Positions 6,284-47,167 are shown, numbered from the stretch's first letter. The stretch: 64,000 nt of DNA from Epithemia pelagica (GCA_946965045.2 OX337238.1:1612001-1676000); one strand, 5' to 3'. Notes: generated from the letters alone by a model not told the origin. Program-made: numbers and translations.

Positions 6284-9034
6284 ATGGACTCAAACAACGA
6301 ACCCGCCTCGCCTCGCATTATGGATGTGGCCTTGGAATTTGTGGGACCCACTTCATCGTCGTCCTCCTCCTCCTCTGCCATGCCAAGCATTAAAAAATTG
6401 GCCAAATCGGCCACACTGGTACGATTTATTGTTCAACAATTGTCCAGTGTCGTGATTACCGGTGAAGTGGCCAATCATGTCATTGTCCAATTGTGGGATG
6501 AATTGGAACGATTGCCCGTTCCGGGTCGTTTGGCCAAGATTCATGTCGCTCATGTGCAATTTACCGAAGCGGGTGCCACGGCCTGGCACGCCTTTTTGGC
6601 CAGTCATGCCACCAGTATTCGACATGTCGTACTCAATCAATTGTTACCACCGCCTCAAACCACCACCAGTTCATCGTCCTCGCCCAACTCGAAGCATTCC
6701 AAAAAGTCGTCGTCGTCGTCCAAAAAATCCAGTAAAAGCAAAAAGAAAAAATTGTCCAAATCATCATCCTCGGCGCAACCACAATCATCCGAGGACACGG
6801 AAACGAATGACAATGGTCCGCAAGAGGATGGTGGATCCCCGCAACAAGAGGAAGAGGAAGACAACGAAGAAGAAGAAGACAATCAAAAGGATGAAGATGA
6901 TAATGACGACAGTGTGACAAAGAAAAAGGCCAGTCCACAACAACAACAAGACAATGATGATGATGACAACGACTCGGAAGAGGACCATGTCCGACGATGG
7001 GCCCACATCTTGACCGCCTTTGAACAATCGCCCTTGACTGTCTTGGACATGTCACGCAATACCTTGCATGGTGCCACTTTGTGGAATGTATGGAAACAAC
7101 GACAAGACTTTCAACAACGACTACAACAATCCTCGGATACTACATCATCCATATCGTCTTCCAATACTAGGACTCAATTGCGCCAATTGATTTTGGATTC
7201 GGTCGATTTAAATGCCGATTCCTGGAAGGCCTTGTCCACCACCTTTGTCTGGTCTGGATTGGAAGATTTGCATATCGTCTTGGATGAACCCATTCCTTCC
7301 GAAGAAGCCGCCTTGGAAGCTGCCCAACAAATTGTTCGACAAGCCACCAAATTGTCTAGTTTGCGATGGATTCAAAAACAGGGATCCGACCAACCCTTGC
7401 CCTGGACTGGATTGCGAGACATGGCTGTGGCACGAGCTGCGGCTGCGGCGGCACAACCATCGACGACGGCGACAACAACAGCTGCACCACAATCGCCTCA
7501 TTCCACGTCCAACAACAACAACAACAACAACAATGGATCATCTGCTGCAGGAGGGGATCCTTCGTCGCACAGTAATAAATCATCGTCTTCTTCGTCGCTC
7601 CCTCAATTAAAACATTTGGTTTTGGAAGGTCCTGGGACGCCCGACTTTTGTACGGCTCGTGATTTGCAAGAATTGACGGCCACACTCAAGGAATTGCCGC
7701 GTCTCAAAACGTTGAAATTGCGACATTTGGGTTTGACGGACGTGACAAGTATTTGTTCGGCTCTGCGGGCCAGTCGTCCACCCCTCGAAGTCTTGGATTT
7801 GTCCTACAATGAGTTGTCTTCGACCGGATGTCGTCGATTGGTTGATTTGAAACGCGTCTCTCGCATTTCGCAATCCTTGGCCTTGTTGGTTGTCAATGAC
7901 AATCGAGTGGAAACTGCCGCGGCACGAGAATTGTGGGAAACCTTTGGAACAACCATTACCTTGGACAATAACCCGGGTATTGATTGCGGACAAATCATTG
8001 CCGATCTCATGTCCAATCAAGCTCAATTGGAGCGAGAACGCGAAGAACTACGAGCCCAATTCATGGAACGCAACAGCAACAACAACACGAACAACAATAC
8101 GACTACTGCAAATACTAGCAATAATACTACGGCGGCCGCCGTGTCGGCAGCAGCCGAATTGGCGGAATCGATGAGAAAAGAAAACCGTCGTTTGCGGGAA
8201 GAACGCGATTTGTTGGCCAAGGCCTTTTCCATCATGGGTATTAGTCAACAAGTTGACGAACACAAACGATTGCTCGATCGGGTTCAGCGGCTCGAAGATG
8301 TCATGGTGTTGGGGGCATCCTCCTCGAAACGAAGCATGGGAAGTGGAGGCAGTGGGCATAGCAGTGCGGGAGGAAGTCATCATGGCGGATCCAATTCCAA
8401 CGTCGGTAGTTTGGATGCTCTCCTGTCGGGTGGCGGTAAGACTTCCTCGCGACGACGCATTCATGTCAATGAATTGCCCTTGGATCGTTTAACAGCGGCT
8501 GCAGCCGCAGCGGCTGCTGCAGCTGGACGAATTCCTTCGGCTCGATCTGTGGGATCCCTCAATCGATCGCATTCAGGACGGTCTACCGCCAGTCGAGGCT
8601 TTGCAGATTTGGACGAAGCCTCTCGAGCCGTCACGGCCGATTCTTCGTCCTCACCGCATCATTCTCAACATCATCATCCCCACCACCACCATCCTCACTC
8701 ATCGTCCTCTCATTCTCGAAAACAACAACAAACATCGTCTTCCTCGTCCGTCCGAGGAAGATCGTCCTATCATGCTCGAGGAACACCGACCAGTCCAGGA
8801 GCACGCAGTGTGGCTTCAACGGGTGGCAGCAGTTCTCTTCAGCATGCCATGATGGATTCTACCATTGTCGCCACAGCCGAACGATCCGATGCAGCGCCAC
8901 AACAACAACGACGATCGTCCAATTTGCGACATTCGAGCTATACCACGCCATCCTCCTCCTCTTCGGTAGGTGGTGGTGGTGGTGGGAGTCGACGCGCCAG
9001 TACGCGACACTTGTCATCCCTCGATATGGAATAA
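6284..9034 (+). CDS. RNI-like leucine-rich repeat protein with coiled coil and low-complexity Ser/His/Asn tracts
   Basis: LRR units LTVLDMSRNTL, LKTLKLRHLGL, LEVLDLSYNEL and LALLVVNDNRV; coiled coil around ELAESMRKENRRLREERDLL; first ATG at 6284. Confidence 0.85.
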   Translation: MDSNNEPASPRIMDVALEFVGPTSSSSSSSSAMPSIKKLAKSATLVRFIVQQLSSVVITGEVANHVIVQLWDELERLPVPGRLAKIHVAHVQFTEAGATAWHAFLASHATSIRHVVLNQLLPPPQTTTSSSSSPNSKHSKKSSSSSKKSSKSKKKKLSKSSSSAQPQSSEDTETNDNGPQEDGGSPQQEEEEDNEEEEDNQKDEDDNDDSVTKKKASPQQQQDNDDDDNDSEEDHVRRWAHILTAFEQSPLTVLDMSRNTLHGATLWNVWKQRQDFQQRLQQSSDTTSSISSSNTRTQLRQLILDSVDLNADSWKALSTTFVWSGLEDLHIVLDEPIPSEEAALEAAQQIVRQATKLSSLRWIQKQGSDQPLPWTGLRDMAVARAAAAAAQPSTTATTTAAPQSPHSTSNNNNNNNNGSSAAGGDPSSHSNKSSSSSSLPQLKHLVLEGPGTPDFCTARDLQELTATLKELPRLKTLKLRHLGLTDVTSICSALRASRPPLEVLDLSYNELSSTGCRRLVDLKRVSRISQSLALLVVNDNRVETAAARELWETFGTTITLDNNPGIDCGQIIADLMSNQAQLEREREELRAQFMERNSNNNTNNNTTTANTSNNTTAAAVSAAAELAESMRKENRRLREERDLLAKAFSIMGISQQVDEHKRLLDRVQRLEDVMVLGASSSKRSMGSGGSGHSSAGGSHHGGSNSNVGSLDALLSGGGKTSSRRRIHVNELPLDRLTAAAAAAAAAAGRIPSARSVGSLNRSHSGRSTASRGFADLDEASRAVTADSSSSPHHSQHHHPHHHHPHSSSSHSRKQQQTSSSSSVRGRSSYHARGTPTSPGARSVASTGGSSSLQHAMMDSTIVATAERSDAAPQQQRRSSNLRHSSYTTPSSSSSVGGGGGGSRRASTRHLSSLDME

Positions 9035-9656
9035 TCCCAGAGTGAGTACATGTGGAAGAACCGAAACCCACACACGGGAACATTCCTAATACTACCAGAA
9101 ATAGACACATTACTACCAGGAATAGACACATCCTCACATGCAACGACACAATCGAATACTCGTTTCTGACAGTGTTGTTGCTGTTGAATGCCAATCATTG
9201 CACTTGTAACTTGTAACCTCTTTCTATTAGCCTTCATGGAAGAAGATTCAATGATTTACTGGAGACTGGAGTCTGTCTATATCCCGTGGCCACCACAAAG
9301 AATAAAGCTACCTTACGTAATTTGGGTCCCGCACGCGCACGTGCTGAAAATAACGGTGCCAAACGGTCAATGCGCCGGGTGAACGAACACTCGCAGACGA
9401 CCGACGGCACATGTTTTAGCGAGGGAATGAGTCTTCCCCACAGTTCATATGAACGATAAACGCATCGCACGCAGAGAAAGAAAAAGAGGAGCAACAAGGT
9501 GATGGGTATTGTGTGTATGTAATAAGAAAGATCACAAAAAGGAGTAGCCACAAGAAAGCAACCAACCACCCAACCAAGGGAACCCAGGGAAGGAGTGTGC
9601 TATCTCGTTGCTGACGCTTGCAGTACAAGTCGTCGTCATTCCGTAGTACACGTACC

Positions 9657-16700: not shown

Positions 16701-19381
16701 AGTGCCTGACGGGCTCCACTCCTGATGTTAGTTTCTTACTTGCTCATTATTTCTGGGAACCAATTTATTTTTCTTATGATCCTGATCGATCTTCTTACCC
16801 TTCTACTGGTAATGAATCTAAAGGTCGTTGGGTAGGTTTTGGTACTGGAGTTGGGGATCCATTAACATGGAAGATCCTTACTGATGCGACCTCTACGATT
16901 TTGTTTCGATCTACTATTCGTAGTGCTACCTCTTCTTTACCTAACCGACGTCTAGATCCAGAAAAAGGGGAGATAGTTCATGTCAGAGGTCGTCATGAAG
17001 ATAGTTCTTCTGGATCTACACCTCCTATGCCTACTATAGATCCACATGATCTACTTGGCCGTAAATTTCTTGGCCCTAAACTGGAAACTGGGGAGCGTTT
17101 CCGTGGGTTAGTTGTTGCTATGGTCCAAGATCAAGCTTATCGTGACCGAAAACGTTTTGAAGACCTCAGTTTTGAAGTGGAATATGATGAAGGTCGCCTT
17201 CGTGAGATTGTCACTTACAACGAACTTCTCAATCATCTAGATCATGATCCTGACGACGTTGTTTTCTCTGAGCAAGAGTATCGCATGCGGCAAATCACTG
17301 CTCATCAAGGTCCTCTCAAACCTACTGATGCTCATTACAAGGGATCTAGCTACAACGTTCTTGTCGAATGGGAAAATGGGGAGACTAGCTATGAGCCTCT
17401 TTCTTTTATAGCTAGTGATGATCCTTTGCTATGCGCTATCTACGCCAAGAATAATGGACTACTCGACTTAGATGGCTGGAAGCACCTAGCTAAATACGTC
17501 AAGACTGAAAAACGACTCATCAAGACACTCCGTCGACATTTGCAGCAAGCCAAGAAAAAGATGATCCGGCGTAACTCTCGCGCGCAAATCAAGTACCGTT
17601 TTGGCGTGCAAGTCCCACGGGATTATGATGAAGCTATCCTGCTAGATGTTCAGAACAAGAATAACTTATGGTCAAAAGCAACTGAACTCGAGCTAGATCA
17701 AGTCATTCATCAATATAAGACATTCCTAGTTCGGGATAAGGCTATTTTTCAAAATGGGAAGCTTATGAATGCTCCTGAAGGATACCAACGATTGAGAGTT
17801 CACCTAGTTTTCGATGTCAAACATGATGGACGTCGAAAAGCTAGACTTGTAGCTGATGGGCATTTGACTATACGAGACCCGTCTATGTCAAGCTACTCAG
17901 GAGTGGTATCAATACGTGGCCTACGTCTAGTTATCTTCCTCAGTGAACTGAACAAGCTGGAGATCTGGGCAGCTGACATTGGAAATGCTTACCTAGAAGC
18001 ACAAACAAAGGAGAAGCTATTCATCATAGCTGGTCCTGAATTTGGAGATTTGGAAGGAAAAATCTTGATTTTTGATAAGGCACTTTACGGGCTTGTGACC
18101 AGTGGAGCACGATGGCATGATAAACTCTACGACGTTTTACAAGAAATGGGATTTAAACCATGCAAGATTGAACCTGACATCTGGTTTAAGCTAAACGAAG
18201 AGCACGGCGTCTACGAGTACATAGCAGTTTACGTAGACGACCTAGCAATTGCTGCAAAGAACCCGAAAGAAATTTGTGATACTTTCACTGAAAAATTTAA
18301 ATTCAAACTCAAAGGTGTGGGCCCAATAGCATATCACCTAGGGTGTACATACAAGAGAGAACCAGATGGAACATTGGTTGGGGACCCCAGACGATACGTT
18401 GAGAAGATACTCGAAGGATACGAAATCTTATTCGGGAACAAACCGAAAAAGTACAAGACTCCATTAGACCGGCAAGATCATCCTGAACTAGATGATAGCG
18501 AGCTATGTGAAGAAAAGGACATTGCCATCTATCAATCCATTATAGGGCAACTGCAATGGGTGGTGACTATAGGTCGTTTTGACATCTTCACTTCCGTCAT
18601 GACATTGGCTAGATTCCGTGCCGCTCCACGAATTGGCCATTTGGAACGTGCAAAACGAGTTGTTGGATACCTAGCAGGCATGTATCATGGAGCAATCCGT
18701 TTTAGACTACATGAACCAGACTACTCCAATCTGCCAGACCAAAACTATGACTGGTTCCGCGTTTACGATGGAGCACGAGAGGAAGTTCCAAAAGATGCAC
18801 CGGAACCTAAGGGTCTACCCGTTGTTACAACTACCTATGTCGATGCTAACCTAAAGCACGACATGATTACGGGGAGATCAGCATCTGGGATTCTACACCT
18901 AGTCAATGGAACTCCCATGGACTGGTACTCCAAGCGACAGGCAACGGTTGAGACTGCAACCTTTGGCTCTGAATTTGTCTCTGCACGGATTGCATGTGAT
19001 CAAATCATGGAACTACGCATTTTTCTTCGTTACCTAGGAGTACCACTACGAGATTCTAGCTACCTATTCGGAGATAACAAGTCAGTGGTAACCAATAGTA
19101 CGGTACCACATTCAATCCTTAGCAAACGCCATCATTTTCTGAGCTACAACCGTGTACGTGAGTGTATGGCATCGAAGGCTATCAAGTTTTACTGGAAGGA
19201 TGGCAAGACCAATCCCGCTGACGTGTTGACTAAAAATTGGGATTTTGTCACGGGATGGCCACTCCTTAAACCTCTGCTATTCTGGCGAGGTGATGTTAGT
19301 GCTTTGAACGATAAGATCAATGAACCAAAACAAGACAGACAGACGAAAGGGGAGTCGCACAAGGTAGATGACCGTGACTGA
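13754..19381 (+). CDS. Copia Gag-Pol polyprotein (1875 aa): gag, protease, integrase with chromo-like tail, RT, RNase H
   Basis: Protease IDRGANGG; integrase TDTVF/SDRA/QNFAENRY; RT VFDVKHDGRRKARLVADGH, ADIGNAYL, VYVDDL; RNase H YVDAN, TFGSEF, GDNKSVV, NPADVLTK. Confidence 0.97.
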   Translation: MTEPTENAVDLSQDPVFQHIFTTILNQPPDRLSDFQDWFTHHKFLNFSEFLELYVFEPETLADDLEFKTKRQPKTQKLHPTFAKQIRAFLLWANHLHSLAQRFFGADDWLALTREDYGRFRIGTYFPTSSQSRALNVPSTPGTPSLGTPGGKSTMSNSSQSQQDLTTFRKGIKRDSTAYEVLKEEKNYDPFMRSFRATALAQGLGNVLDPSFVVDSTDPAASALYREQQIFLYSVLVRCLQTDKGRAIIRAHTTDMDATAVLDELRTHHTDSELSRKEIMRLTAYLTNIRLDSAWRGTTSQFLLHFNEQLRLLDSLCDSSQKLPDFSRTTFLMQAVDGNEDLRRVKIFDDFLKSQSGTHAKMSYDDYYRVLTNAAFQFDQHLASKNGSKRRAYASQQCDHDIFDSDHSSSHDDFIQEDLVSIFQANRSRNRIDTRTQRIFLPKDIWDATSDEVKEMLKAHNKRILANSPNSKPRQTNLHEVSESSADENPTATDNTEEACQEAAVATESDPSPDQLLTMLHEQTDYPESDIQRVLSANKAKSKGVSFSINATYRFSKANLNPTFQLIDRGANGGLAGSDLKIIHKTGRKINIIGIDNHEVTGLDIVTAAGLYSTQLGTIVGIFHEYAYLGKGRSIHSPPQMEYFKTLVDDKSVLVGGRQRIETLDGYALPLIFKGGLVYLDSLGIPTDNDLATYPHVVFTSPDEWNPDVMDHSHSSNPDTHSDWMDLVNPDPIDRDFSATGDYVHRVNLVSQILTLHQQTNLAGAVDFQHSRYHQQSLKSEDFEALRPYFAWASADSIANTFKVSTRYVGFSPHDYLKKHFRTRNPVLNIGRRREGVATDTVFADTPAIDNGSKAAQIFVGRDTLVCDVYGVKSDAQFVNTLEDNIRLRGAMDVLISDRAQALVSKKVQDILRSLFISQYTSEPHHQHQNFAENRYSTLKRWTNLILNTSGCPPSCWLLALDYASTVLNHLASPALNGRTPIECLTGSTPDVSFLLAHYFWEPIYFSYDPDRSSYPSTGNESKGRWVGFGTGVGDPLTWKILTDATSTILFRSTIRSATSSLPNRRLDPEKGEIVHVRGRHEDSSSGSTPPMPTIDPHDLLGRKFLGPKLETGERFRGLVVAMVQDQAYRDRKRFEDLSFEVEYDEGRLREIVTYNELLNHLDHDPDDVVFSEQEYRMRQITAHQGPLKPTDAHYKGSSYNVLVEWENGETSYEPLSFIASDDPLLCAIYAKNNGLLDLDGWKHLAKYVKTEKRLIKTLRRHLQQAKKKMIRRNSRAQIKYRFGVQVPRDYDEAILLDVQNKNNLWSKATELELDQVIHQYKTFLVRDKAIFQNGKLMNAPEGYQRLRVHLVFDVKHDGRRKARLVADGHLTIRDPSMSSYSGVVSIRGLRLVIFLSELNKLEIWAADIGNAYLEAQTKEKLFIIAGPEFGDLEGKILIFDKALYGLVTSGARWHDKLYDVLQEMGFKPCKIEPDIWFKLNEEHGVYEYIAVYVDDLAIAAKNPKEICDTFTEKFKFKLKGVGPIAYHLGCTYKREPDGTLVGDPRRYVEKILEGYEILFGNKPKKYKTPLDRQDHPELDDSELCEEKDIAIYQSIIGQLQWVVTIGRFDIFTSVMTLARFRAAPRIGHLERAKRVVGYLAGMYHGAIRFRLHEPDYSNLPDQNYDWFRVYDGAREEVPKDAPEPKGLPVVTTTYVDANLKHDMITGRSASGILHLVNGTPMDWYSKRQATVETATFGSEFVSARIACDQIMELRIFLRYLGVPLRDSSYLFGDNKSVVTNSTVPHSILSKRHHFLSYNRVRECMASKAIKFYWKDGKTNPADVLTKNWDFVTGWPLLKPLLFWRGDVSALNDKINEPKQDRQTKGESHKVDDRD

Positions 19382-34025: not shown

Positions 34026-35073
34026 TGGGACATACTCCTCTCTTGTCTAATAAGGGTGCGATTGGGGGGGTACCTTTGTTCGTCCGTCATCCGAAAGGAA
34101 AAAATTGTCTCGTATTTTTTCCCAAAGCGCCAGCCGGGTGATATCGCCAGCCTCCCTTCGATCGTTCGAAATAGACGCGCCGGTCACGCCTTGTATTGCT
34201 GGCACAAGGGCCAGGAATCGTCTCACTTTTCCAGCAACACCACAAAAGACGACCATGAGCACACCAAAAACCAAAAGAAAACCATCCAGCCGTACGAACG
34301 AACACAGCGACAACTTTATGGCCAAAACCATCCACCTAGATCACAAGTGAAGGCGGAATACATCAAAGGACGGATGACAACATAAAACATGACAATCAAC
34401 CACTGCAATGATGAAGCGAAGGTTTGACAGCGTCATCATGGGGTATGTAAGCCCAGGAAGCAGGAAGCCTAAACTAGTAGTGGACTATGCTTTTATCTTT
34501 CCCATAGACAAAGTGCCAGGAGCTTGTGTTGATACTCCTAGAGGTGCATTGCACCATGTGTGTGTATTTCATGGTGTGCGTGTGATGATTCCGTGAAGCT
34601 TGATCCACTACTACGTAAAGAGTACTCGCTTCTGAAACAGTATAGACTTTAGAGTACAAAATGGGCTTGTAGATTTCTCTGTGCATGTCTCGTCAAGTCT
34701 CACGGCTCACGGTTCCTGTTTCCCATTCATTAGCGCAAGCGGCTACACAATACAAGCTGAGTTCAGGGAGTATGTTCCTGACGTAGACCCCTCGTAGATT
34801 TAGTACCATAAAATATAATCCTCAATAGCGTTTGGCCTGACTAGTGAATGAAAGTGTCCGACTCGTGACAACCCAGTGTCTGAATAATAAATTTTTTATT
34901 CGTACCGTGATGTGTGACAGCTTCCGAACGCTAGAATTCCGTCGAAAATGATGAAAAAACGGTTGTTGTCTAACGACCATGGTGAAGGGCCATCCCAACC
35001 GCAAACGATGTTGCCGAGCTGCATCCGGACGCTTTAGGGTTTACTTGAAACACCCCCAACGGGGCAACATCGT

Positions 35074-38000
35074 TTGCGGTTGGCATCATCCTCAATGACA
35101 CGATCATCGGACCCAACCGACGCAACACAGTCTCGGATGGAACGAAGTTTATCTACGAAAGAGGTTCTTGACGTCTTCAAGACGCGATGCTCCCCAACCT
35201 CGTTTGGATTCTGCGACAAGTGGATCCAAGACACCAACATTGTAGGATACATGAGCACTTGGTTGCCAGGACTGTCAACAACCAGACTGCATCTTGTTTT
35301 GTCTAAAGATGTTGTCCTTAAACTCTGTTTCGAAGCTGAGACGTCGGAACCAAACAAGTTTGGCTGGTACCGCCACAAAGTCACAATCCAAAAGAAAAGA
35401 TACACATTCTTTTATGTAAGCTCCGACACAACAACACGGCCAGTGATATTCGACGATCACCAAGAATGGCTGGAGGCTGCAGAAACGAACACGATTCGGC
35501 GGTCGGGACGAGCGAAGCCAACGAAGCGAAGGAACGAAGAGTCACCAGGGTTGCGTGAAGGCACGCTAAATACATCCAAGCAAGCAAGAAACACTTCAAC
35601 TCCACCAGCAATCAAGAGCACTGCAACGCAGCAACATGGTCAACCGCCACAAATTGGAGACAGCCCTACCGAAATGCAAACGTCACCACCTCACGACAAC
35701 ACAAATCAGGTGCTTGTTGGAGCAATCCAACATCCTGAATTGGCCACAGACGAAATCGGCCATGACCATCCACAGAGTTTGCCGATTGGTTTTTCAGTTT
35801 TCGAGAGTGAGATGATCCAAGGTCTATCGCAACAAATGGAAAGCGCCTATTTTGATGAGCCAAGGAACCGTAGGCTCTTTGCCGGCAAATGCGATTCTCC
35901 AGGATCGTCAAAACGAAATCTTGAGCGATGGATAGAAACCCTTGAAAGGGCCATTTCCAACGTGGAGGCACTTCCGAATGTGGTTAACAAGGGAGACATC
36001 TTCCCCCTCAACCAGGAACAGCAACAGAGGGTACTGCTCAAGGCAACGTATTTACAACTTTCTTATAAGATAACGTTGCTTGATATGCCACACGGTCGTA
36101 CATGGCTGAACTGCATAAGCGAAGCCATTAGCAAAATGGAACAGATTTATGGTGAAAAAGTAAAAAAACATCCCAAGACCATTGCTCGTTTTCACAGGTA
36201 CTTTCGGGAAAACGACAGTTTCCCTCATCCCAACTACCACGTTCATATTGGGAAAGAGCCATCGCCCGTCTTATTCGTTCACATACCTGAAGCAAAGGTA
36301 AAGTTTGAATGCTGGGCAAAGGAAAACCTGAGCACTCTTACAACAGAGTCTGCTCTAATGTACCGGAGGACAACATTGCTTCCGGATATGCATACCATGA
36401 TCGTACAAGAGTGCATGGATACGAATGCAACGCCAGTATCGTACGAGGCCTTCTTGGCATCGATGAAGCTTTCCACCATTTCGCAAAGCACAGCGTGGCG
36501 ATGTATTGCTGCTGCAGGGTTCGTGTTCAAGGAACACACGAAAACATACTTCACTGATCAACACGAAAATGCTGAGAATGTTGCCCACAGAGCTGCTTTT
36601 GTCAAGAAGTACTTTAAGTGGGAAGAGTTGTCGTATTGGTGGGTGCAGCTCCCTACCGAGGATGCAATCAAACTTGAAAACGAAGGGAATGCGGGCAAGG
36701 AGAAGCTCTTGCCAAACAGCTTTGTATTTGAGTACACTGATGTAACAACAGGCAAGCAGATGCGGGAGTACCATGTTGATGCCTTCCCAAGCGAATTTGA
36801 ACGGTACATCAAACCAGAAAACACAATTCACAATGGAAACTTGTCACACAGGTTTCCCTCCGACCGCAAACCTGTCATCCTCATCGGCCAGGACGAATCG
36901 ATCTACAAGCAGTTTTCCTTCTCGTCTAAGGCATGGTACACTAAAGATGGCGCAACTAAAATGCTGCCAAAGGATGATGGACATGGGATGATGATCAGCG
37001 CTTTTGTAAGCCGATCATGGGGCTTCCTTATGAACGGAAACCCGTTGCTTGCTGCGAGTCTTTTTCGGATTAATGAACTCCGTCTACATGAGACACACAA
37101 CAAATACGTCTCTACCGAGGCTGCAGTGAACCTCAATGGTCACACTGCCAAGACTCCAATTACCAATGCCCAACCGTTCACTCGCTTTTTTGAATACGGA
37201 GCAGATAAAGAGGGATATTGGAATTATGAATACATGGCCTTGCAGTTGGAGGATATTGTCGATTGCCTCGTGGTCATGTTCCCCGCCCATGACTTTGTCT
37301 TTTTGTTCGACCAAAGCAGTGGTCATGGAAAACAACAATCCGATGGGTTAAATGCTCTGAACATGAATAACGACTGGGGAGGAGCTGTTCCCAGCATACG
37401 GGACACACAAATTATTGATCAAGCTTGCCTTGGCCCGTACAACCATGACGACAAACTACGAGTTGGTGACGTACAACACCTCGTCTATCAGGAGAACGAT
37501 CGTGGTCCAGTTGCTAAAAAAGGCCATCGTCTCAATGACGCGCAGCGTGTCGCATCGGAGAATACACACCGAACTGGTAGAAAGAAAAAGCGCAACCTCA
37601 CAAAGAAGGAGCTCATGGCAAAACTTGTCCGGGTCATGGGACCTGGAATGCAACGTTCATTTCAATCGAAAAATGCTGGTGAACTACAGGACCTTTGTAA
37701 ACGCTCCAACATTGCAACGGTGATTGAAGATGATGTGATCGAGGAAGGCTGGATGAATGCTGCAAAAGGGCTCTTTCAAGTGTTATGGGAGCGGGGGTGG
37801 ATAGACCCTAACAACATGATCAAGTACGTCAAGACAACCAGAGATGCATGGTTGGAAGCGGATAAGAAGACTGTGAAAGAAGCCTATCAGGCGGACTACA
37901 AAAAGTACTCTATGGTTCATCTGATGAGCGAATGCTCCGATTTCAAGAACGAAAAATCTGCAATGGAGAAGCTGGCGGAAGACTTGTCTGAACGACATCA

Positions 38001-38403
38001 TTGCAGGATCGAGATTCTCGTATCGACCAAGTATCACTGTGAAATGGCCGGTGAGGGGATCGAGTATGGCTGGGGTTACTCAAAAAAAGTCTTTCGTGCT
38101 TTCTCACTGAATGAGAAGAAAGACAAAGCTGCCTTTTTACGATGTTTGACAGCGAGCCTGAAGAAAACAACACCCGAAATCATGCGGAAAATGTCAGCAA
38201 AGGCACGTCGCTATATGCTCGCGTACTTGTTAAACGATCAAAATTCCAACAACAGAGACTATGCAGCTGCGGGCCTCTCGTATGCCGAAATTGAAAAGAT
38301 GTCAAAAGCAATCAAGTGTCACCGATCCGCCTTCGACCAAGATCATGGCTTCATCTCACGTCTCTGGAGAGAAACGCAAGGATCTGGTGCAGTAGAAACC
38401 TGA
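35074..38403 (+). CDS. 1109-aa DDE transposase of IS630/Tc1/mariner type
   Basis: D1 in IGQDESIY (36892), D2 in FLFDQSSGH (37309), E in KYHCEMAGEGIEYGWGYSKK (38062), matching the PxxSP(D/E)LNPIExxW-type motif. HTH-like segment LSTISQSTAWRCIAAAGF precedes the core. Confidence 0.88.
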   Translation: MRLASSSMTRSSDPTDATQSRMERSLSTKEVLDVFKTRCSPTSFGFCDKWIQDTNIVGYMSTWLPGLSTTRLHLVLSKDVVLKLCFEAETSEPNKFGWYRHKVTIQKKRYTFFYVSSDTTTRPVIFDDHQEWLEAAETNTIRRSGRAKPTKRRNEESPGLREGTLNTSKQARNTSTPPAIKSTATQQHGQPPQIGDSPTEMQTSPPHDNTNQVLVGAIQHPELATDEIGHDHPQSLPIGFSVFESEMIQGLSQQMESAYFDEPRNRRLFAGKCDSPGSSKRNLERWIETLERAISNVEALPNVVNKGDIFPLNQEQQQRVLLKATYLQLSYKITLLDMPHGRTWLNCISEAISKMEQIYGEKVKKHPKTIARFHRYFRENDSFPHPNYHVHIGKEPSPVLFVHIPEAKVKFECWAKENLSTLTTESALMYRRTTLLPDMHTMIVQECMDTNATPVSYEAFLASMKLSTISQSTAWRCIAAAGFVFKEHTKTYFTDQHENAENVAHRAAFVKKYFKWEELSYWWVQLPTEDAIKLENEGNAGKEKLLPNSFVFEYTDVTTGKQMREYHVDAFPSEFERYIKPENTIHNGNLSHRFPSDRKPVILIGQDESIYKQFSFSSKAWYTKDGATKMLPKDDGHGMMISAFVSRSWGFLMNGNPLLAASLFRINELRLHETHNKYVSTEAAVNLNGHTAKTPITNAQPFTRFFEYGADKEGYWNYEYMALQLEDIVDCLVVMFPAHDFVFLFDQSSGHGKQQSDGLNALNMNNDWGGAVPSIRDTQIIDQACLGPYNHDDKLRVGDVQHLVYQENDRGPVAKKGHRLNDAQRVASENTHRTGRKKKRNLTKKELMAKLVRVMGPGMQRSFQSKNAGELQDLCKRSNIATVIEDDVIEEGWMNAAKGLFQVLWERGWIDPNNMIKYVKTTRDAWLEADKKTVKEAYQADYKKYSMVHLMSECSDFKNEKSAMEKLAEDLSERHHCRIEILVSTKYHCEMAGEGIEYGWGYSKKVFRAFSLNEKKDKAAFLRCLTASLKKTTPEIMRKMSAKARRYMLAYLLNDQNSNNRDYAAAGLSYAEIEKMSKAIKCHRSAFDQDHGFISRLWRETQGSGAVET

Positions 38404-38814
38404 TCTAATCTCCATTTATCATCAAAATGCATGTAACTTAACTATTTATAACAGCAATCCATTTTATTGAATGTATTTCTTGTCAGTTATTGGTATCAAT
38501 GATCACTTCCGTGTTGCGTGCTCGTGTTGCGTGTTGGATTATCAGTTTGTAAGTACCTCGAAAATGTGAGAGAGCGAGAAAATGGACGATTTTTGGAGCA
38601 GACCTCGCGCGAAACACGCCTCCCTCTCCGAAAACGCGCACGCATCGCAAAACTGGCACGCAAATCCTTAAGTAACTCAGCCCACATACCAAAACTTCAC
38701 CGTTTTTTAGTATGTGAGCTCAAGATTTTTTTTTGGAATGTGAGCTGAGGGCTGAGGAGAATGCTGCGTTTCGTGTTTCTTGTGTTTCGTGTTTCGAGTT
38801 TTTGCGTTTCGACC

Positions 38815-41689
38815 ATGGGGAAACCAAGCCCTAAGAAACAGTATTCAAAAGCAGGCGCTCAAAAACGAGACAGCATGAGTGACAAAGGAAATCTTGACGC
38901 TCTTATACTTGCAATAGATGCAGCGGAAGAGCAGTCAGCCAAAGCAGCAGCGGCGCCCGAAGCAGCAGCAGCCGCAGCACCCGAAGCAGCAGCAACAGAC
39001 GAAGCGACAACAACAAAGCACCATCGGTTTCTTTCGGATCAAGACTTTGCCGAAGTGAAGGATAAAAAGCTTGCAGATGTTCGGCGTGGCCATCCAGAGA
39101 AGGACCACAGCAAACAGTAGTCGGAAACTCAAATGCGGCAGCTCCTCACCGATACGCGCACAGCGGACTACAAGAAAGGCGTCGAGGAAGTGGAGAAACT
39201 CCCTTCTTGTTCTGGACGGGATCCAATCAGGACTTTCACCGAAGGCCTCAAGACGCTCTCCAAGATCAAAGACAGTGCTGTACTTGCCTGTGCTATGGGA
39301 GAGTATGTCTCACGGAAGATTTCGGCCACTTTTTTGGTCCAAGAAGCTCCAATTCGGAAGCCCGGTTCTGGCTTGCAAAAGGGGAAGATTGTGCCACTTT
39401 CAAGTGGAATGGGTCTCCCTGTCAAGAAGAACAGAAAACATACCTTCCCGATCGGCAAGCATGTCGGTTACACATTTGCAAACAATCCGGTAGTCAAGAT
39501 CTACCTTGGAAAAGTGCTTCTGTTTGAGGTGAAGGAGTCAAAACTCCCAGGCGCCGGGTTTGGCGTTTTTGCAGTTCGGACAATCAAAGATGGTGAAGTG
39601 ATTGGTGCGTACACGGGAAACGACGTCACGTCTCGGACAGTTGTGCCCAACGAGTACGCGATTCAGTTCGGACGTGACAATCGAAGGCTTCAAGCAGACA
39701 ACGACGATCACTTCGGCATGGGGCTGCACTTAATCAACGACCACCTACACCATCGGTACGGTACAGACAATCCACCGGATGAATCGGATGATCAATACAA
39801 CGTGAGAATCATGCCGAATCTTCTAGTCAAGGCAATCAAGCCGATCGAAAAGGGCGACGAGCTGTCTTTGTTTTATAACCTTTCGGACGAATCGCCGACG
39901 TCCTCCGAACAGGTTATCCGACCGTCGACGAAAGGTGACGACGACGAAGACGAGGGAAAGAAACGCGGTCGACCCAGTGATGAAAATGAAGACGACAGGA
40001 AAAAAACAAAGAAGGCTTTCGCTACCTCTTCTACTACTGTTTTCCGCCCAGTTGCTGCTGTTGCTCGTCCTCCTGCTCTTCCTTCTCCGCCTCCTCCGCA
40101 AGACGTTTCTGGGCACTACAATTCGCCCCCTCAGCTGCCACCACATCATCCTCCGCCGTATCATCCTCATCCTCCGCCGTATTATGATCCACCGCATCAT
40201 CCTCATCCTCCGCCATATTATGATCCACCGCATCGTCATCATCCTCCGCCATATTATGATCCACCGCATCGTCATCATCCTCCTTCGTATCATCCTCCGC
40301 CGCATCATCATCATCATCCTCCTTCGTATCATCATCCTCCTTCGTATCATCCTCCGCCGCATCATCCTCCGCCGCCGCATCATCCTCAGCCGCATTACCA
40401 TGGGCATCCCCCGTCCTATAATCAACTCCATTATGGAGGAGGTTATCAGGGGGCTCTGCCTTTATCGCAGCAACAACAACGCACGACCCAGCCGGTCGTA
40501 GGTTCACCGGAGCGTCCGAGCAATCCCGTCCCACCTGCAGCACAAGCTCAACCCGCCACTCGACCCGATCGCTCCCTTTCTGGAATGTTAGTACGAGTAA
40601 TTGCCTTGCCAGAATTTTCAGAAAGTGACACCACGGATGACAATTCTTTTGATCAGGAGATGTCGGATGACAATTCTTTTGCTCCGGAGATGAATGCGAT
40701 CGACGAGTTAATGCAGGAGGGTGAATGGCAAAAGCAACAGATGTTGCAAAATAGAGAATTGCGCAAGAAGTATTTCAAATCGCTATACGATAGTGAAAAC
40801 AAAATCTATCGAGGCTGTTTTTTTACAACGCCGCCAGACCTCCTCCAGTTGTTGGAGCAAGTGTGGAAAGGCAAACACCTGAACAGTAAAGGAAAGGGCA
40901 CCTTTTTCAAATCTGTTCAAGACTACACCCCAAATTTGTTGATGGCGATGATGGAACATGAGGGCATGGTGGCCAACACTCGGTACTTCAACGACTGCGA
41001 CCCAGAACATGTCCAAAAAGTCACGACAGATTTCAAGCAGTTTCTTGCCTCAGCTCTCCATGGAATGAACTACGCAAAAGATGAATCATTTGCGGACCAA
41101 ATGAGCATTCACCTTTCGCTTATGAAGACCACTCGGGAAGAAGTGCAAGAACCTCACATCGACTTCTTGTTCCTGGCCGTAACAGGAAACATGTCCGAGA
41201 GTCCGCGTTAGGATGACTCGGCGATCGTTCTCAGATCTGCCACTCCGGGAACGCATCCCCTTCATTGTTTTTATGCCCCTGACGGAGGAGGGTATGTCCA
41301 TTGAATTGTGGAGCTACCGTGCTGAGAAGCACGAGAACTATACGCATGAGTTGGGTAACGTGGTACAAATCCCGTACGGCAAGTTTCTCCTCGTTCGAGG
41401 AGATACTGTCCATGCTGGTGGCTTTAAGACTGGAGAGCTGGGAAATCCACGTGCACATTTTTACGTGTACCAAGGAAAAGATGGGACCATCCACGATCCC
41501 ATGCCAAAGAACAGCTACAATCTACCTTCTGGACAAAGGCTTTCAGAGTGCTACTTCCATCAAAAGGACATTCCTGGTGATCGCCCAAGTGGGATCATTC
41601 GGGTTAACCTTACGCTCGATGGCCATCGCGTTGCCGTCCAGGGTGATTATCGTAGAGTGCTTCTAGCTACGAAAAAACCTGGTATTTAG
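38815..41689 (+). pseudogene. SET domain - Pro/His/Tyr repeat - 2OG-Fe(II) oxygenase-fold fusion gene, disrupted
   Basis: SET motifs GAGFGVFAVRTIKDGEVIGAYTG, HLINDH and KGDELSLFYN (~39520-39880). DSBH-type EPHIDF (41155), VHAGG (41411) and NPRAHFY. In-frame TAG at 39118-39120; frameshift plus stop near 41165-41182. Confidence 0.75.
40135..40435 (+). repeat. Coding Pro/His/Tyr-rich repeat (HPPPYYDPPH units)
   Basis: Repeated CATCCTCCGCC.TATTATGATCCACCGCAT blocks. Confidence 0.9.
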
Positions 41690-42197
41690 ATCGCGAACAA
41701 AGAAGCCGATCAAACTTAGATCTTTCCTTGTGGTGAAAGTGTGTTATTGTTGAAAAAGAATACCATGGTACGTTGAGTTGCAGTATGACATTAAGATTTA
41801 CTAGTTTATTCCTTCATATTATACTTTAGTACATTGTCGTGTTGTGTCGAAAACGCAAAATATGAGATAAGAATCATAGCTCGTCTGGGACCAATCACAA
41901 ACTCCCTCGTACATCCATACGAGGCGTGCCGGCAAACCGGGACCCAACTACCGACACTAGCAAGCTGGATAACGACGATGACAATGATGATGAAGAGGAC
42001 AAACAGGATGAGCGATGATAGCTACAACAAGGACGACTACAATACAACGACGACAATGATAGCCACGACAATGACGAGGACTTGGACGACGACAATGATG
42101 ATAATCACAACAAGAATGACTGTAGAAGCACTACCATGATGACAAATCGATTCATATTTAGTGATTAAGGATACCTAAAACGTCCATCAGTAGATAT

Positions 42198-43092
42198 CTA
42201 GTACGCCTTGTCCTCATGATCCAAGTAATCGGGACCAAAAAGCCCGTTTTGCTGCGTACCGATGAAGTCTTCTTGGGTCTCGAGAAATCCATCATCGGCA
42301 TACGAATCAATGGATGTCCGGTATGCACGGGAAGGATTGCTAAAGAACAAAGGAGGAGACGACGGGATGTTTTCTCCCAATGCCAGCGACTCATTCAAAG
42401 TCTGGCGAGGGTCTGTCGCTCCACTTTCCTTCACCTGTTCCTCAGCAATCCGACGCTGGAAAGCATGCTTCTGGGAGGGGGTCAGTGCGAAAGCTCGAGA
42501 CGCCACCTTCGGGGAAGAAGTTACTTTCTTCGGGGTCACATAAGACTCTGGAGTCTTGTTCTCGACGTCGTCCTCCTTCTTGATCTCCTTCTCGGGCTTG
42601 CTGTCGGGCTTGTTGTTGGGTTTGGTGTCTGTGGCAGCAGAGGGCGCGTCGTGAGAAAGGGAGACTCAAAACCAACAATGAACAATCAAACTTACCTTCT
42701 TTGCCGACAGCCTCGATCGCAAGGAGCTCTGCCGCGATATCCGACAGGTTAGCGCATTCGACGTCCTTGTTGCTGACGAAGAACACTGGGATACCATCTT
42801 CATCCCCAATGGTGAGTTGCCACTGTTTTGCGCGCTCGTGCCACGACGAAGGACCCTCAAGGTTGAAGGTCACATGCTTCTTTGTCGAAGCGGGAGACTT
42901 CGTCGTCATCGTCTTCTTCTTCTTCGACGTTTTGTTGTCCACGGCCGTCTTTGTCTTCATTTTCTTGTTTGCCTTGTTTCCCTTGTTTCCCTTGTCGGAG
43001 GGAAATGCGGTTGTGGAGGGAGCTGCGGCGGAGTCCTCCTGCTCCTTCATCGCAGACTCAGCTCGTTTGGTAGCACTACGCGTCTGGCGCAT
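42198..43092 (-). CDS. Two-exon Lys-rich, largely disordered protein (cargo of the 9.7-kb element)
   Basis: ATG at 43092. GT-AG intron 42695-42629 (67 nt; GTAAGT donor, CAG acceptor) joins ...AVGKE|DTKPNNKPDSK... in frame to TAG at 42198-42200. Confidence 0.7.
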
Positions 43093-43263
43093 CGTTGGAA
43101 AGTGAGAACACAATAGGGATTCGTTCGTTTGATTGTTGTGTTTGTTTGTTTGATTGTTGCCCGCTCTCCGTTCTTGTGTCATCTAGGGAATCCCCCCGCG
43201 CTCATTCGTGAACAATATCGGCGCGCGCCACAAAATCAACTTGCAGCATGAAGCAACTTCCGA

Positions 43264-43836
43264 ATGACCCGCCGTGCAATGGAACAATCAAACAGAGACG
43301 ACAGGAAGAGGCAAGGAAGAACAAACAAGATGACCAACATGAGGACGAAGTTCGAGTTCAACGAAGAGGATGGCCGTGAGGGTGGTGCTGGTCTCCCGTT
43401 CAAGTCGTGCTTTTATGCCAGCGATGTTTGCGCGCTCATCGGGCCCATGTCGAGAAACAAGGACACTGGCCACAACATCGTTGACCGTGGCCATCTGCTT
43501 GTGCAGCGGGAGCTTGCAACCGACTACCTACGGATTGCAGTCTTTGACCGGGATGCAACAAGCGAGCATGAGGAACCAGCGTTGGTTGTTCCAGTTGGGT
43601 TCATTGCTCTGTCGCACCTGGACCAGGTCTCTGGAAAGACGAGCAAGAACGGACCTCCCATGGGACGCATCCGCCTCTACACACGCTGCTCCATCAACCC
43701 TAAAGCCTGCATGGAACCCCAGGTTGTTACAATCTACATGGGCAGCAAGGATATGGATCGCTTCAACATTTCGCTTGGTGCGATGATGCTCAAGCACCCG
43801 CTTCAAAATCTCTTCTTTAATCATCAACAAGCCTAG
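43264..43836 (+). CDS. 190-aa hypothetical protein (cargo), divergent from the Lys-rich gene
   Basis: ATG-TAG ORF with coding-like composition and an alternating hydrophobic beta pattern ending in a helix; family not recognised. Confidence 0.6.
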   Translation: MTRRAMEQSNRDDRKRQGRTNKMTNMRTKFEFNEEDGREGGAGLPFKSCFYASDVCALIGPMSRNKDTGHNIVDRGHLLVQRELATDYLRIAVFDRDATSEHEEPALVVPVGFIALSHLDQVSGKTSKNGPPMGRIRLYTRCSINPKACMEPQVVTIYMGSKDMDRFNISLGAMMLKHPLQNLFFNHQQA

Positions 43837-45270
43837 ATAGTGAACAATGTAGCAGCGTTTTATGATTATCATTTGAGTAGGATCTTCATTCTCTATGAAT
43901 ACAATCTAATTCTATAGTTGTGTTACGTTTACCGTACAATACATTGCGTTCAGGTACGGCTGTGTGAGTCACAACAAAGAAAAGAACATCAATCTTTGTT
44001 GTGAACGACGCAACTTCTAGTCTAAGTTCCATATATCTAACGAGAAGAATATCAATTTTTGACGTGAACAACGCTACAAGTGTTCATAGTCTTTGTTCTA
44101 TCTTCTATCATTCGATTCTACAATAGAGGTGCATTGGTTGCACCAAGTTTTGCCGTGAGTCGCCGTAGTAAATCGCGCGGCGACCACCTTCAACTAGATA
44201 AAACGACACCTACAAAACGAATGCAGCGCCGACATCGTTCTCCATGCTCAGCCCATGAATGGAGAAGAGGTTCAGAGCATGGGATCATGGAGCCGTCTCC
44301 TATTTGGCAAGAGATCGGTCAAAAGGACCGTTCACCATGGTCAATTTTTGGTAGAACGGTAGAGGCATAAATAGAAGGGTATATTAAGGGGATGGCTTGC
44401 GCGGATTACGTAGATTTCCTACTGGAGCGCTACGTCAGGAACATTCTGTCTGAACTCAGCTTGTAGGGCGAAGCCAGTTATTACAGTTGGCTTGGACGTT
44501 ATAATAATGTGCTAAATCAAAAGAAATTTGAATGAAATAATTTTTACATTTTTTAGGAAAATTTGGGAATAACCGTATGGACAGCAGACGGGAGGTACCC
44601 CCGCAATCGGAGGGATATCCTCCGTTGCTATGTATACTATGAGCTATGAGCGCTCGATTGTGGATCTCATAGCCCCATTCCGTTGGATGGGGACCATGGT
44701 CATGGCCGATCTAAAAGCATCTTTGCACCCTTTCTCTCTATACTCATCCATGATCCGCACAACAAGTTTTGGCTCGTCCTACCAAGGGGCGAGGGCATGA
44801 CACTAGAAGGTGCTGTTTGTTTCTATTGCGTGCGACTAGCTAGGAGCACACTTCAAAAAGGAAACTTTTGGATTATGTATCTACGATCGTAGGCATCCTA
44901 GGTCCTATTGCTTGAGTATATGGCATCGCTTCTCGATCGGCCACAACAGAGGGAACACATCCATCGTGTTGTGAAAGCTTGGGGAGGAGATCAACGATGA
45001 TCGACTTTTGCACAAACACCACGGGTCTACTAGAGACAACTGCAATGTCCAGAACTCTACCGCAATGATAACAGAAACTCAATGAACGGAGAACGCCTCC
45101 CTCCTGATTCCTAGGGGATGCAAACGAGTCGAAAGCCCCATTCATTAATCGATAGTAGTAACTAAATAGCAATCATATAGATGAAAGGTGCACCAACAGG
45201 ACACCCGCATTTCTTCAGTTTGTGTCCCACACCTCCACCGGCCTCGCCCCGGGAAACGTGGATGACACAA

Positions 45271-46130: not shown

Positions 46131-46608
46131 GGCCGTTCCTTGATATTCTGCAAAAACAAAAATCGACACATGACATCACCTTTTTGTAGACAATTGCGCG
46201 ACACGCCCTCCTTTGGCATTTACAAAACCAAAACCTATAACCGCACTTTTTCCCCCAAGGCCCCCAATAGTCCCCATATTCACTTTGATTTTTATAGACT
46301 AAAATTATCAAAGTAGGACATTATGAGCTTCCTCTTCATTGAGGTTAGGGGGACCGTTGGAGTCGAACGCGCGCCGTTCAAATCCTTAACCGTCATTTTT
46401 GTTTCTGTAGGGCCCAATGTACACTAGCAAGAAGAAAGCACTATCCCTAATGTCTGTTCAGCTTTTGCCGGCCTGCAAAAGTTGGACCCAACTTTTGCAG
46501 CCTCAAAAGCTGAAACAGCGTCGAACCCGGATTTGACGCCATATTTCCGGGTATTTTGTGACGTGTCACGCTCCAACTTTTGTTTTTGCAGAATATCAAG
46601 GAACGGCC
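46131..46608. mobile_element. 478-bp non-autonomous PIF/Harbinger-type (Tourist-like) MITE
   Basis: 31-bp perfect TIRs GGCCGTTCCTTGATATTCTGCAAAAACAAAA; 3-bp TSD TGA at 46128-46130 and 46609-46611; no coding capacity. Confidence 0.88.
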
Positions 46609-47167
46609 TGAGTAAAAATTTTCGTCGTTCCGCCCATCTGACCAATGTTCCGTCGATCGACTGGAAGTGACAGTGACCAGCGAAACCGGTCGGACTCGGA
46701 CGACATTTCAGTAACTGACCAAAATATGTCTGACCAAATTTGAAGTTTGTATGCTCCTTTGTCCGTCCTCTAGTTTATGGCTTGAATCCATTCCGCTGCG
46801 TTGCCTTTCATAAAAGGATAACCATATGACATCATGGCATTTAAAGAGGGTTGCTCGGACTGGTCGATTGAGAGAGAAAGCGCCTTTTCTTGTGTTGGTG
46901 TGGGGATGACAAATGTCAAATGATAACTTCATCATGCACTACAACTTAAAGTGGACCTTTCATCTGGTTCTTTATACAAGGATTTATCGAATTAAGAAAG
47001 CGATATTGCAAGCACAATCGGCAGTGATGGCAACGCGTAGGACTTCGACTTATGGCTGCCTACAACTGGTCTAAAATAGCGGGTAGGGGTCTTAGAGTTA
47101 CTCCTAAGGTACCTTATCGATCCGTGGCTAGAGAGGTGACGTGATCGGTCAGTCCGAATGAGATCAG

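Follow-up and report, generated by a model that had tools for sequence, protein, structure and literature searches.

The question raised by the locus described here is how far a transposon of the Tc1/mariner kind can depart from its minimal form while remaining mobile. Tc1/mariner is the textbook minimal transposon, with a single gene and no host factors. The window, by which we mean the whole stretch of DNA analyzed (64,000 nucleotides of the diatom Epithemia pelagica, GCA_946965045.2 OX337238.1:1612001-1676000), contains an element of 9.7 kb at positions 34753–44463. We consider it highly probable that this element is an autonomous, TA-inserting transposon of the IS630/Tc1/mariner (ITm) type with three stable accessory genes. 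The copy in the window is an older one and is partly decayed.

The element was bounded by terminal inverted repeats (TIRs) of 34 bp, of which 31 positions were identical, and TA was found outside each end, in agreement with an earlier note made from the sequence of the window. The left TIR (CAAGCTGAGTTCAGGGAGTATGTTCCTGACGTAG; 34753–34786, plus strand) was the same in all copies of the family, and the right TIR (44430–44463, minus strand) was its inverted partner. The two copies of the TA target-site duplication, to which no strand applies, were located at 34751–34752 and 44464–44465. The three mismatches between the left and right TIRs were identical across copies, which indicated that they are a feature of the family and not the result of decay. 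The TIR pattern was absent elsewhere in the window, where 0 matches were expected by chance, and the TIR sequence was located exclusively at element ends; the objection that TIR-like sequence might be common without these contents was thus refuted. Five open reading frames (ORFs) were found inside the element, at 35074–38403, 38761–39120, 39133–41211, 42442–43182 (minus strand) and 43264–43836 (plus strand). The last two were the divergent gene pair of the earlier note, and both were open.

Copies were fetched from a single ENA diatom assembly (ERZ21939226) via the loci of transposase relatives. At least nine further copies were present at other TA sites in this assembly, and the expectation of the earlier note that the same gene set would recur at different TA sites was borne out. 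Seven copies (L002–L008) were full-length (9721–9724 bp), shared the same two TIRs with TA on both sides, and were each located in a different gene neighbourhood. Any two of them were 99.94–99.99% identical, with 1–6 substitutions and no more than 4 gapped columns in the alignment. Apart from single substitutions, the copies differed by a 3-bp deletion that kept the reading frame and a 1-bp deletion between genes, and all four ORFs were open in each of the seven. The near identity of these seven 9.72-kb copies, together with their intact ORFs, indicated that the family transposed very recently, and they are called the young copies below. Two further copies resembled that of the window. L016 was a complete, window-like copy at yet another TA site. 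Over its left 5.1 kb, L001 matched the window copy at 99% identity; from its position 14747, within the SET gene (the equivalent of window position 39876), it was interrupted by an insertion beginning TGTAGGAG, with an ORF for a Copia-type RVT_2 polyprotein downstream. The cluster of the transposase at 90% identity comprised 43 distinct sequences. The family is a multi-copy diatom transposon that was recently mobile.

TA was found on both sides of all 12 complete elements, which belonged to four lineages, and the terminus CA(A)GCTGGTT..CTGACGTAG was common to the sister lineages and to an element of Fragilaria crotonensis, described below. The right end of L006 adjoined a miniature inverted-repeat transposable element (MITE) of ~480 bp. 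The near side of the MITE read ...CATTTA-[element]-TA-GGCC(MITE), and its far side was followed by TTA. The TTA duplication of the MITE was restored only when the element and one TA were removed, which supports a true duplication of TA on insertion, although this is one site, where a T could precede TA by chance. The empty site of the window copy would read ..CACAATAGGGCG... Paralogous empty sites were sought in all fetched flanks, where shared repeats were found beside the insertion points and never across them.

Two repeats in the flanks are recorded here. The MITE (TIR GGCCGTTCCTTGATATTCTGC...) was present at 46131–46609 of the window and at 19336–19825 of L006. Its target duplications were 3 bp in length (TGA in the window and TTA in L006), like those of Harbinger/Tourist elements, and the right flank of L002 likewise started with GGCC. 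A repeat of ~380 bp in foldback arrangement was shared by the right flanks of the young copies L004 (19352–19953) and L008 (19031–19632; also 8230–8847), at 9–18 bp from the insertion point. This repeat may mark a preferred landing region, or its position may be a coincidence.

The transposase gene (35137–38403, plus strand) was intact and encoded 1088 aa, with a winged-helix-like N-terminal domain, a disordered linker, helix-turn-helix (HTH) helices and an RNase H-like core as predicted domains. The earlier note had described a DDE transposase of 1109 aa. The DDE ORF was recovered, but the length was not: the large ORF (35074–38403) has 1109 codons when counted from a TTG, whereas the start codon that it shares with the young copies is an ATG at 35137. 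At least 141 relatives were found at E ≤ 0.001 in a collection of 5.8 billion proteins, mostly from marine metagenomes and diatoms (Thalassiosira exigua and Fragilaria crotonensis), and none of the 141 had an explanatory Pfam domain. The family occurs widely in marine metagenomes, and for want of a Pfam model it is probably missed by standard annotation.

A phmmer search of the transposase against PDB gave nothing usable. The AlphaFold model, built on 62 homologues, had a mean predicted local distance difference test score (pLDDT) of 83. In this model, residues 1–120 formed an N-terminal domain with weak resemblance to winged helices (Z 5–6), residues 123–222 were disordered, and a helical region and an alpha/beta core followed, with a separate folded domain of ~220 aa placed between the second Asp and the Glu of the core. 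Three residues, D586 (in GQDE), D725 (in FLFDxSxGH) and E976 (in GEGIEYxWG), were invariant in the 62 homologues, and the GIEYxW motif at E976 corresponded to the PIE..W of ITm transposases. The D,D,E core with a PIE..W-type motif had been recognized by the earlier note and was confirmed here. When the candidates of Foldseek were realigned by VIA-align, the Mos1 mariner transposase reached Z 15.2 over chain residues 6–340 and the catalytic domain of Sleeping Beauty reached Z 14.2 (200 of 224 residues; root-mean-square deviation, rmsd, 3.9 Å), and the next-best matches were retroviral integrases and TnsB (Z ~7–8.4). The Mos1 alignment took in the DNA-binding part plus the core, but with a high overall rmsd. 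Mos1 was also the top match when the whole 1088-aa model was compared with PDB by Foldseek, yet at just E 0.1. Fold clusters of AFDB named "Tc1-like transposase DDE domain" or "DDE-1" matched at E 1e-24 to 1e-9, and the neighbours in the ESM Atlas were DDE_3 families. Among 41 family members, HTH_33, the winged helix of IS630-type transposases, matched weakly in seven (best E 0.014), and the Tc3 HTH model matched in one.

By its predicted fold and its target, the transposase represents a very divergent ITm-like family and not a canonical member. Of the ITm membership proposed in the earlier note, the parts that concern the fold and the TA target stood, and those that concern sequence models and the spacing from the second Asp to the Glu did not. 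The term "IS630/Tc1/mariner-type" is correct as a statement of resemblance, and strict membership is unproven.

The second large gene encoded a fusion protein. In the young copies it was a single ORF of 967 aa (L002 type), in which a PR/SET-like domain (residues 266–373 in L002; PF00856, 26.7 bits) was joined to a C-terminal domain by a Pro/Tyr/His repeat linker of ~190 aa. The SET domain of the window copy matched PF00856 with 30.9 bits against a cut-off of 22.4. Its nearest PDB sequences were MECOM, PRDM16 and PRDM12, and weakly EZH2; by eye, the motifs GAGFG and ELSLFY were present and the middle motif read INDH. The C-terminal domain of 378 aa had no Pfam match, but 240 relatives were recovered when 1.84 billion representatives were scanned exhaustively with HMMER. 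In 48 homologues, H181, D183 and H274 were invariant and R287 was 90% conserved. The model of the intact L002 version (pLDDT 83) was matched by Foldseek with probability 1.0 and by 294 PDB entries at E < 0.001, and the neighbours found by VIA-align (Z 12.7) were AsqJ, AndA, FtmOx1, P4H and PHD2. On this model, the C-terminal half has the fold of a 2-oxoglutarate (2OG)-Fe(II) dioxygenase, with the HxD...H triad and a 2OG-binding Arg.

An identity as a TET/JBP or JmjC enzyme was rejected on the ranking of folds. TET/JBP, JmjC and AlkB enzymes were absent among the 50 best matches listed in each of two PDB comparisons, and no TET/JBP or JmjC enzyme was found among the top 30 Swiss-Prot models compared with the oxygenase. 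With these enzymes missing among the listed neighbours, a role as a DNA or histone demethylase was not indicated by the fold. None of the 47 aligned relatives of the oxygenase contained a SET domain. One relative, 36% identical, was located in a conserved cellular neighbourhood (PGK, WD40, TPR and CN_hydrolase) on three independent contigs. Together these observations indicated that the oxygenase domain came from a cellular gene family and that the fusion to SET is specific to the element.

The SET domain and the oxygenase half of the fusion gene described in the earlier note were confirmed. In the window, however, this gene was broken, which the note had not seen. The 5′ part (38761–39120, plus strand) was ended by a TAG at 39118–39120, which is a Tyr codon in other copies; the contigs of three public runs had T, not G, at position 39120. 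The following ORF of 692 aa (39133–41211, plus strand) contained the PR/SET-like domain (39556–39877), the Pro/His/Tyr-rich linker (about 39958–40566) and the first half of the oxygenase with its HxD motif (41155–41163), all on the plus strand. The second half of the oxygenase (41203–41719, plus strand), with the distal His at 41411 and the Arg at 41450, was out of frame. A deletion of 23 bp near 41203, relative to intact copies, put the HxD motif and the distal His and Arg in different frames. L016 had the same oxygenase subtype as the window copy, and its SET and oxygenase were separate ORFs with the break at another place. Between subfamilies, the ratio of nonsynonymous to synonymous divergence (dN/dS) of the SET and 2OG parts was 0.5–0.6.

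The two remaining genes encoded small proteins, here named p250 and p190, and both ORFs were intact in the window. p250 (42442–43182, minus strand) was a basic, low-complexity protein of 246–250 aa, and that of the window was 99–100% identical to those of the young copies. Weak but significant homologues (E 1e-4 to 1e-19) were present at the same place and on the same strand in the two sister lineages L009 and L010. p190 (43264–43836, plus strand; 190 aa) was the best-conserved accessory gene, with dN/dS of 0.09 between the window and the young copies, and no homologue was found beyond this element group. A language model gave a weak lead toward a C2-like fold for p190.

The sister lineages came from the same assembly as the young copies. 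L009 was an element of 7.0 kb with ends TA|CAAGCTGGTTCAC..., whose transposase was 38% identical over its full length, and L010 was an element of 11.5 kb with ends TA|CAAGCTGGTTCGAG... and a transposase that was likewise 38% identical; the ends TA|CAAGCTGGTTC were common to both. Each carried a SET gene without the oxygenase, a minus-strand basic protein and a homologue of p190, in the same order and orientation as in the 9.7-kb element. Identities for the pairs L002–L009, L002–L010 and L009–L010 were 38, 38, and 54% for the transposase, 41, 45, and 63% for p190, and 23, 25, and 33% for p250. The identities of the cargo paralleled those of the transposase in the three lineages, which indicated co-inheritance and not independent capture. 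The identical gene order in every copy spoke against a cargo arrangement that was nested or accidental, and this reading was rejected. The earlier note had considered that the cargo might be found in synteny without the TIRs and the transposase; it was never found in this state, with the exception of the distant cellular homologue of the oxygenase domain (36%).

The relative in Fragilaria crotonensis was 4.56 kb in length, with ends TA|CAGCTGGTTTCAC...CCTGACGTAGG, and its transposase, 32% identical, was its sole gene. The metagenomic relatives also looked single-gene, and TIRs were not found for L012–L015 among them, whose contigs ended near the gene. Single-gene relatives on the one hand and shared cargo in the sister lineages on the other pointed to the likely history: an ancestor with one gene, a branch that then gained SET, p250 and p190, and finally the joining of the oxygenase to SET within the 9.7-kb lineage.

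The window copy was 95.4% identical to the young copies overall. The divergence was mosaic: most of the element was 99–100% identical to the young copies, and two blocks were divergent. In the block at 39850–41850, which covers the linker and the oxygenase, identity was 80–88% and dS was 0.31; the raised dS pointed to recombination between subfamilies. The other block (35052–35650) covers residues 1–160 of the transposase and was 83–89% identical. Of the 59 amino-acid differences between the transposases of the window and the young copies, 45 were located within these residues, with dN of 0.17 and dS of 0.08 (ratio 2.1; Fisher p about 0.04). This excess of replacements, which comes from few sites, is suggestive of diversifying selection on the N-terminal domain. 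The window copy is a partly decayed member of an older subfamily; its SET-oxygenase gene is inactivated, and its transposase, p250 and p190 are intact. As a separate observation, residues 1–160 of the transposase (35137–35616) were hypervariable between subfamilies although both TIRs were identical.

We propose that the element would move by cut-and-paste with its DDE transposase, which would bind the conserved 34-bp ends and insert at TA with duplication of TA. The predicted catalytic core is an RNase H fold of the IS630/Tc1/mariner type to which a domain of ~220 aa was added between the second Asp and the Glu, and the transposase carries ~470 aa of extra, DNA-binding-like domains on its N-terminal side. 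A PR/SET-like methyltransferase, a basic protein of ~250 aa and a protein of ~190 aa were inherited with the transposase as the lineages split, and the SET gene of the 9.7-kb lineage later gained a cellular 2OG-Fe(II) dioxygenase domain via a proline-rich linker. The analysis shows the structure of the element, its insertion at TA, its recent mobility, the folds of its proteins and the co-inheritance of the cargo; we infer that the accessory proteins are expressed and work to the benefit of the element, with chromatin or the transposition complex as their most plausible target. The suggestion of the earlier note that the cargo may counter host silencing is speculative. A more specific idea is offered only tentatively: the SET writer, the oxidative modifier present in one branch, and the two partner proteins might form a self-encoded chromatin toolkit that marks the copies of the element or its targets. 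If this were true, the toolkit would let the element escape or steer host silencing, and the fast evolution of the N-terminal domain of the transposase (dN/dS about 2) would reflect an arms race with the host.

Several results weigh against the reading of the element as an autonomous ITm-type transposon with working accessory genes. The window transposase had no match to a Pfam transposase model (DDE_3, DDE_1 or Transposase_1) at E ≤ 10, no such model matched any of the 41 family members at E ≤ 1, and no PDB sequence was found by the family profile. The distance from D725 to E976 is 250 residues (DD250E), far outside the known ITm range; in ITm elements, the second Asp and the third acidic residue are usually separated by ~30–41 residues (DD34–41), and by up to 82 in Sailor (DD82E). 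The earlier note would have doubted the transposon had there been neither other copies nor an empty site; copies were found, and a true empty-site allele was not observed. In the SET motif, NDH stands in place of the usual NH(S/C), so that the methyltransferase activity is putative. The window copy has a broken fusion gene and L016 a split one, and the fusion is thus dispensable at least for the persistence of a copy. The three public runs that contained the sequence looked like DNA or lacked a recorded library type, and no RNA-labelled run was present among the runs listed. One explanation of the first of these results is that the element founds a separate superfamily, which shares the general RNase H fold and whose TA targeting converged on that of ITm. 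The failure of the sequence models, the size (1088 aa), large inserted domain and DD250E spacing of the protein, and the existence of at least 141 homologues without a Pfam annotation would all be expected in that case. However, Mos1 and Sleeping Beauty were far above other DDE enzymes (Z 15 vs. 8), the alignment with Mos1 spanned the DNA-binding region as well as the core, and the neighbours in AFDB and the ESM Atlas were nearly all DDE_3 or DDE_1. The third catalytic residue lies in GIEYxW, equivalent to PIE..W of ITm, and the target-site duplication is TA. A separate superfamily is therefore rather unlikely in our view.

The extra genes could also be functionless passengers, host gene fragments that were captured accidentally in the manner of Pack-MULEs. 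This explanation fits the origin of the oxygenase domain from a cellular family and its absence from the 7.0-kb lineage, as well as the broken and split fusion genes and the only moderately low dN/dS of the SET and 2OG parts. It is nevertheless difficult to reconcile with the order and orientation of SET, p250 and p190, which were kept in three lineages whose transposases are 38–54% identical and whose cargo diverged in step with the transposase, and with the four ORFs that were open in all seven young copies. The strong constraint on p190 (dN/dS 0.09), which has no homologue outside these elements, is a further point against passengers, and we regard that explanation as improbable. The SET-oxygenase may act off chromatin and modify a non-histone target such as the transposase or the accessory proteins, and the oxygenase might be a prolyl-hydroxylase-like enzyme that acts on proline-rich sequences such as its own linker. 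The neighbours of the oxygenase are small-molecule and prolyl hydroxylases (AsqJ, AndA, P4H and PHD2), the 50 best matches listed in either PDB comparison lacked TET/JBP, JmjC and AlkB enzymes, and a long Pro/Tyr/His repeat lies between the two domains. On the other hand, the closest relatives of the SET domain are PR/SET histone methyltransferases (MECOM, PRDM16, PRDM12, and weakly EZH2), and no substrate can be read from fold neighbours at Z 12. An action off chromatin is possible, and we would expect it no more readily than the chromatin toolkit.

The transposon with three accessory genes that we prefer can be compared with several known systems. It resembles Tc1/mariner and IS630 (Mos1, Sleeping Beauty and DDE_3) in its TA duplication and short TIRs, and in a DDE core of RNase H-like fold whose third acidic residue lies in IE..W, preceded by putative HTH domains. 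In contrast to Tc1/mariner, its transposase is three times longer, with an extra winged-helix-like N-terminal domain and the insertion of ~220 aa, and four genes occupy 9.7 kb where Tc1/mariner has one gene in 1–3 kb. SET genes were incorporated by HarbingerS and by Phytophthora MuDR families, according to the account in PMC12730594, which cites Repbase Reports 2014; the earlier note's statement that some Harbinger-type elements carry SET cargo agrees with that account. As far as that account goes, these are also DNA transposons of stramenopiles with a SET gene as a stable second gene, but they differ in their PIF/Harbinger and Mutator transposases and other target duplications, and no oxygenase fusion is reported there. 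Diverse fungal DNA transposons (KDZ, the Harbinger-like PHISTA and others) carry TET/JBP dioxygenases, which have been discussed as a means of counter-silencing (PMC12730594). They share with the present element the combination of a cut-and-paste transposon and a 2OG-Fe(II) dioxygenase, whereas the oxygenase here is not TET/JBP-like by its predicted fold, is fused to SET, and resides in an ITm-like element of diatoms.

Primate SETMAR (Metnase) likewise combines a SET domain with a transposase of the mariner family. However, SETMAR is a single, domesticated and immobile host fusion gene, whereas the element here is mobile and multi-copy and encodes SET and transposase in two different genes. 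The VANC protein of VANDAL (MuDR) elements is described in PMC12730594 as an accessory anti-silencing protein that acts on the epigenetic state of its own element. VANDAL is thus also a DNA transposon with an accessory gene; the type of protein and the superfamily differ, and the function of VANC has been demonstrated, whereas an accessory role of the cargo here is what we infer. Literature searches found neither this transposase family nor a SET-2OG fusion described, and no report of SET cargo in an ITm-like element, although Repbase Reports could contain an earlier description.

A recently active relative that combines four co-inherited genes with a transposase of triple size and an insertion in the core shows how far the Tc1/mariner architecture extends. 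It is also a third independent case of DNA transposons that carry enzymes of the epigenetic type, after the SET genes of Harbinger/MuDR and the TET/JBP genes of fungi. The seven near-identical, intact copies make the family a realistic candidate for a transposition assay and for a genetic tool in diatoms. New in this analysis are the evidence for TA duplication, the assignment to ITm at the level of predicted fold alongside the failure of sequence models and catalytic spacing, and the co-divergence of cargo in three lineages, as well as the cellular origin of the oxygenase domain and the mosaic, partly decayed state of the window copy.

The left end contained a further structure. In the window, a subterminal palindrome with arms of 24 nt and a spacer of 47 nt was located at 34992–35086 (no strand), just upstream of the transposase start. 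Palindromes of differing sequence were found at the corresponding position in L002 (9844–9952), L009 (9816–9902) and L010 (6948–7036). They were thus present in all three cargo-bearing lineages, 200–340 bp inside the left end and with arms of 19–41 nt; just 7 nt separated the arms in L010, as against 47–49 nt in three lineages. The sequences of the palindromes were unrelated between lineages, which indicated that the structure and not the sequence was kept. The palindrome may be a regulatory feature or a site of transposase binding. Hairpins upstream of the transposase gene were also observed in L014 and L015.

L010 differed from the other lineages in its low-complexity sequence: tandem repeats coding for acidic and basic residues (GAAGAAGAAG..., CATCAT...) were found at 9500–9990 in L010 and were absent from the other lineages. 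These repeats filled the stretch of about 3.3 kb that separated its left end from the transposase gene.

Of the three public runs, whose records give no library type, two looked like DNA, with contigs of up to 509 kb and even depth. The third run (X3) showed depth over the cargo that was uneven by 10–20-fold, and its joints were non-canonical and of low support. Within 38500–44463 of the window, the depth of X3 peaked 10–20-fold at 38.9–39.5, 41.9–42.3, and 42.7–43.9 kb. Either transcripts of the 5′ part of the SET gene and the p250/p190 pair or further partial copies would fit these peaks.

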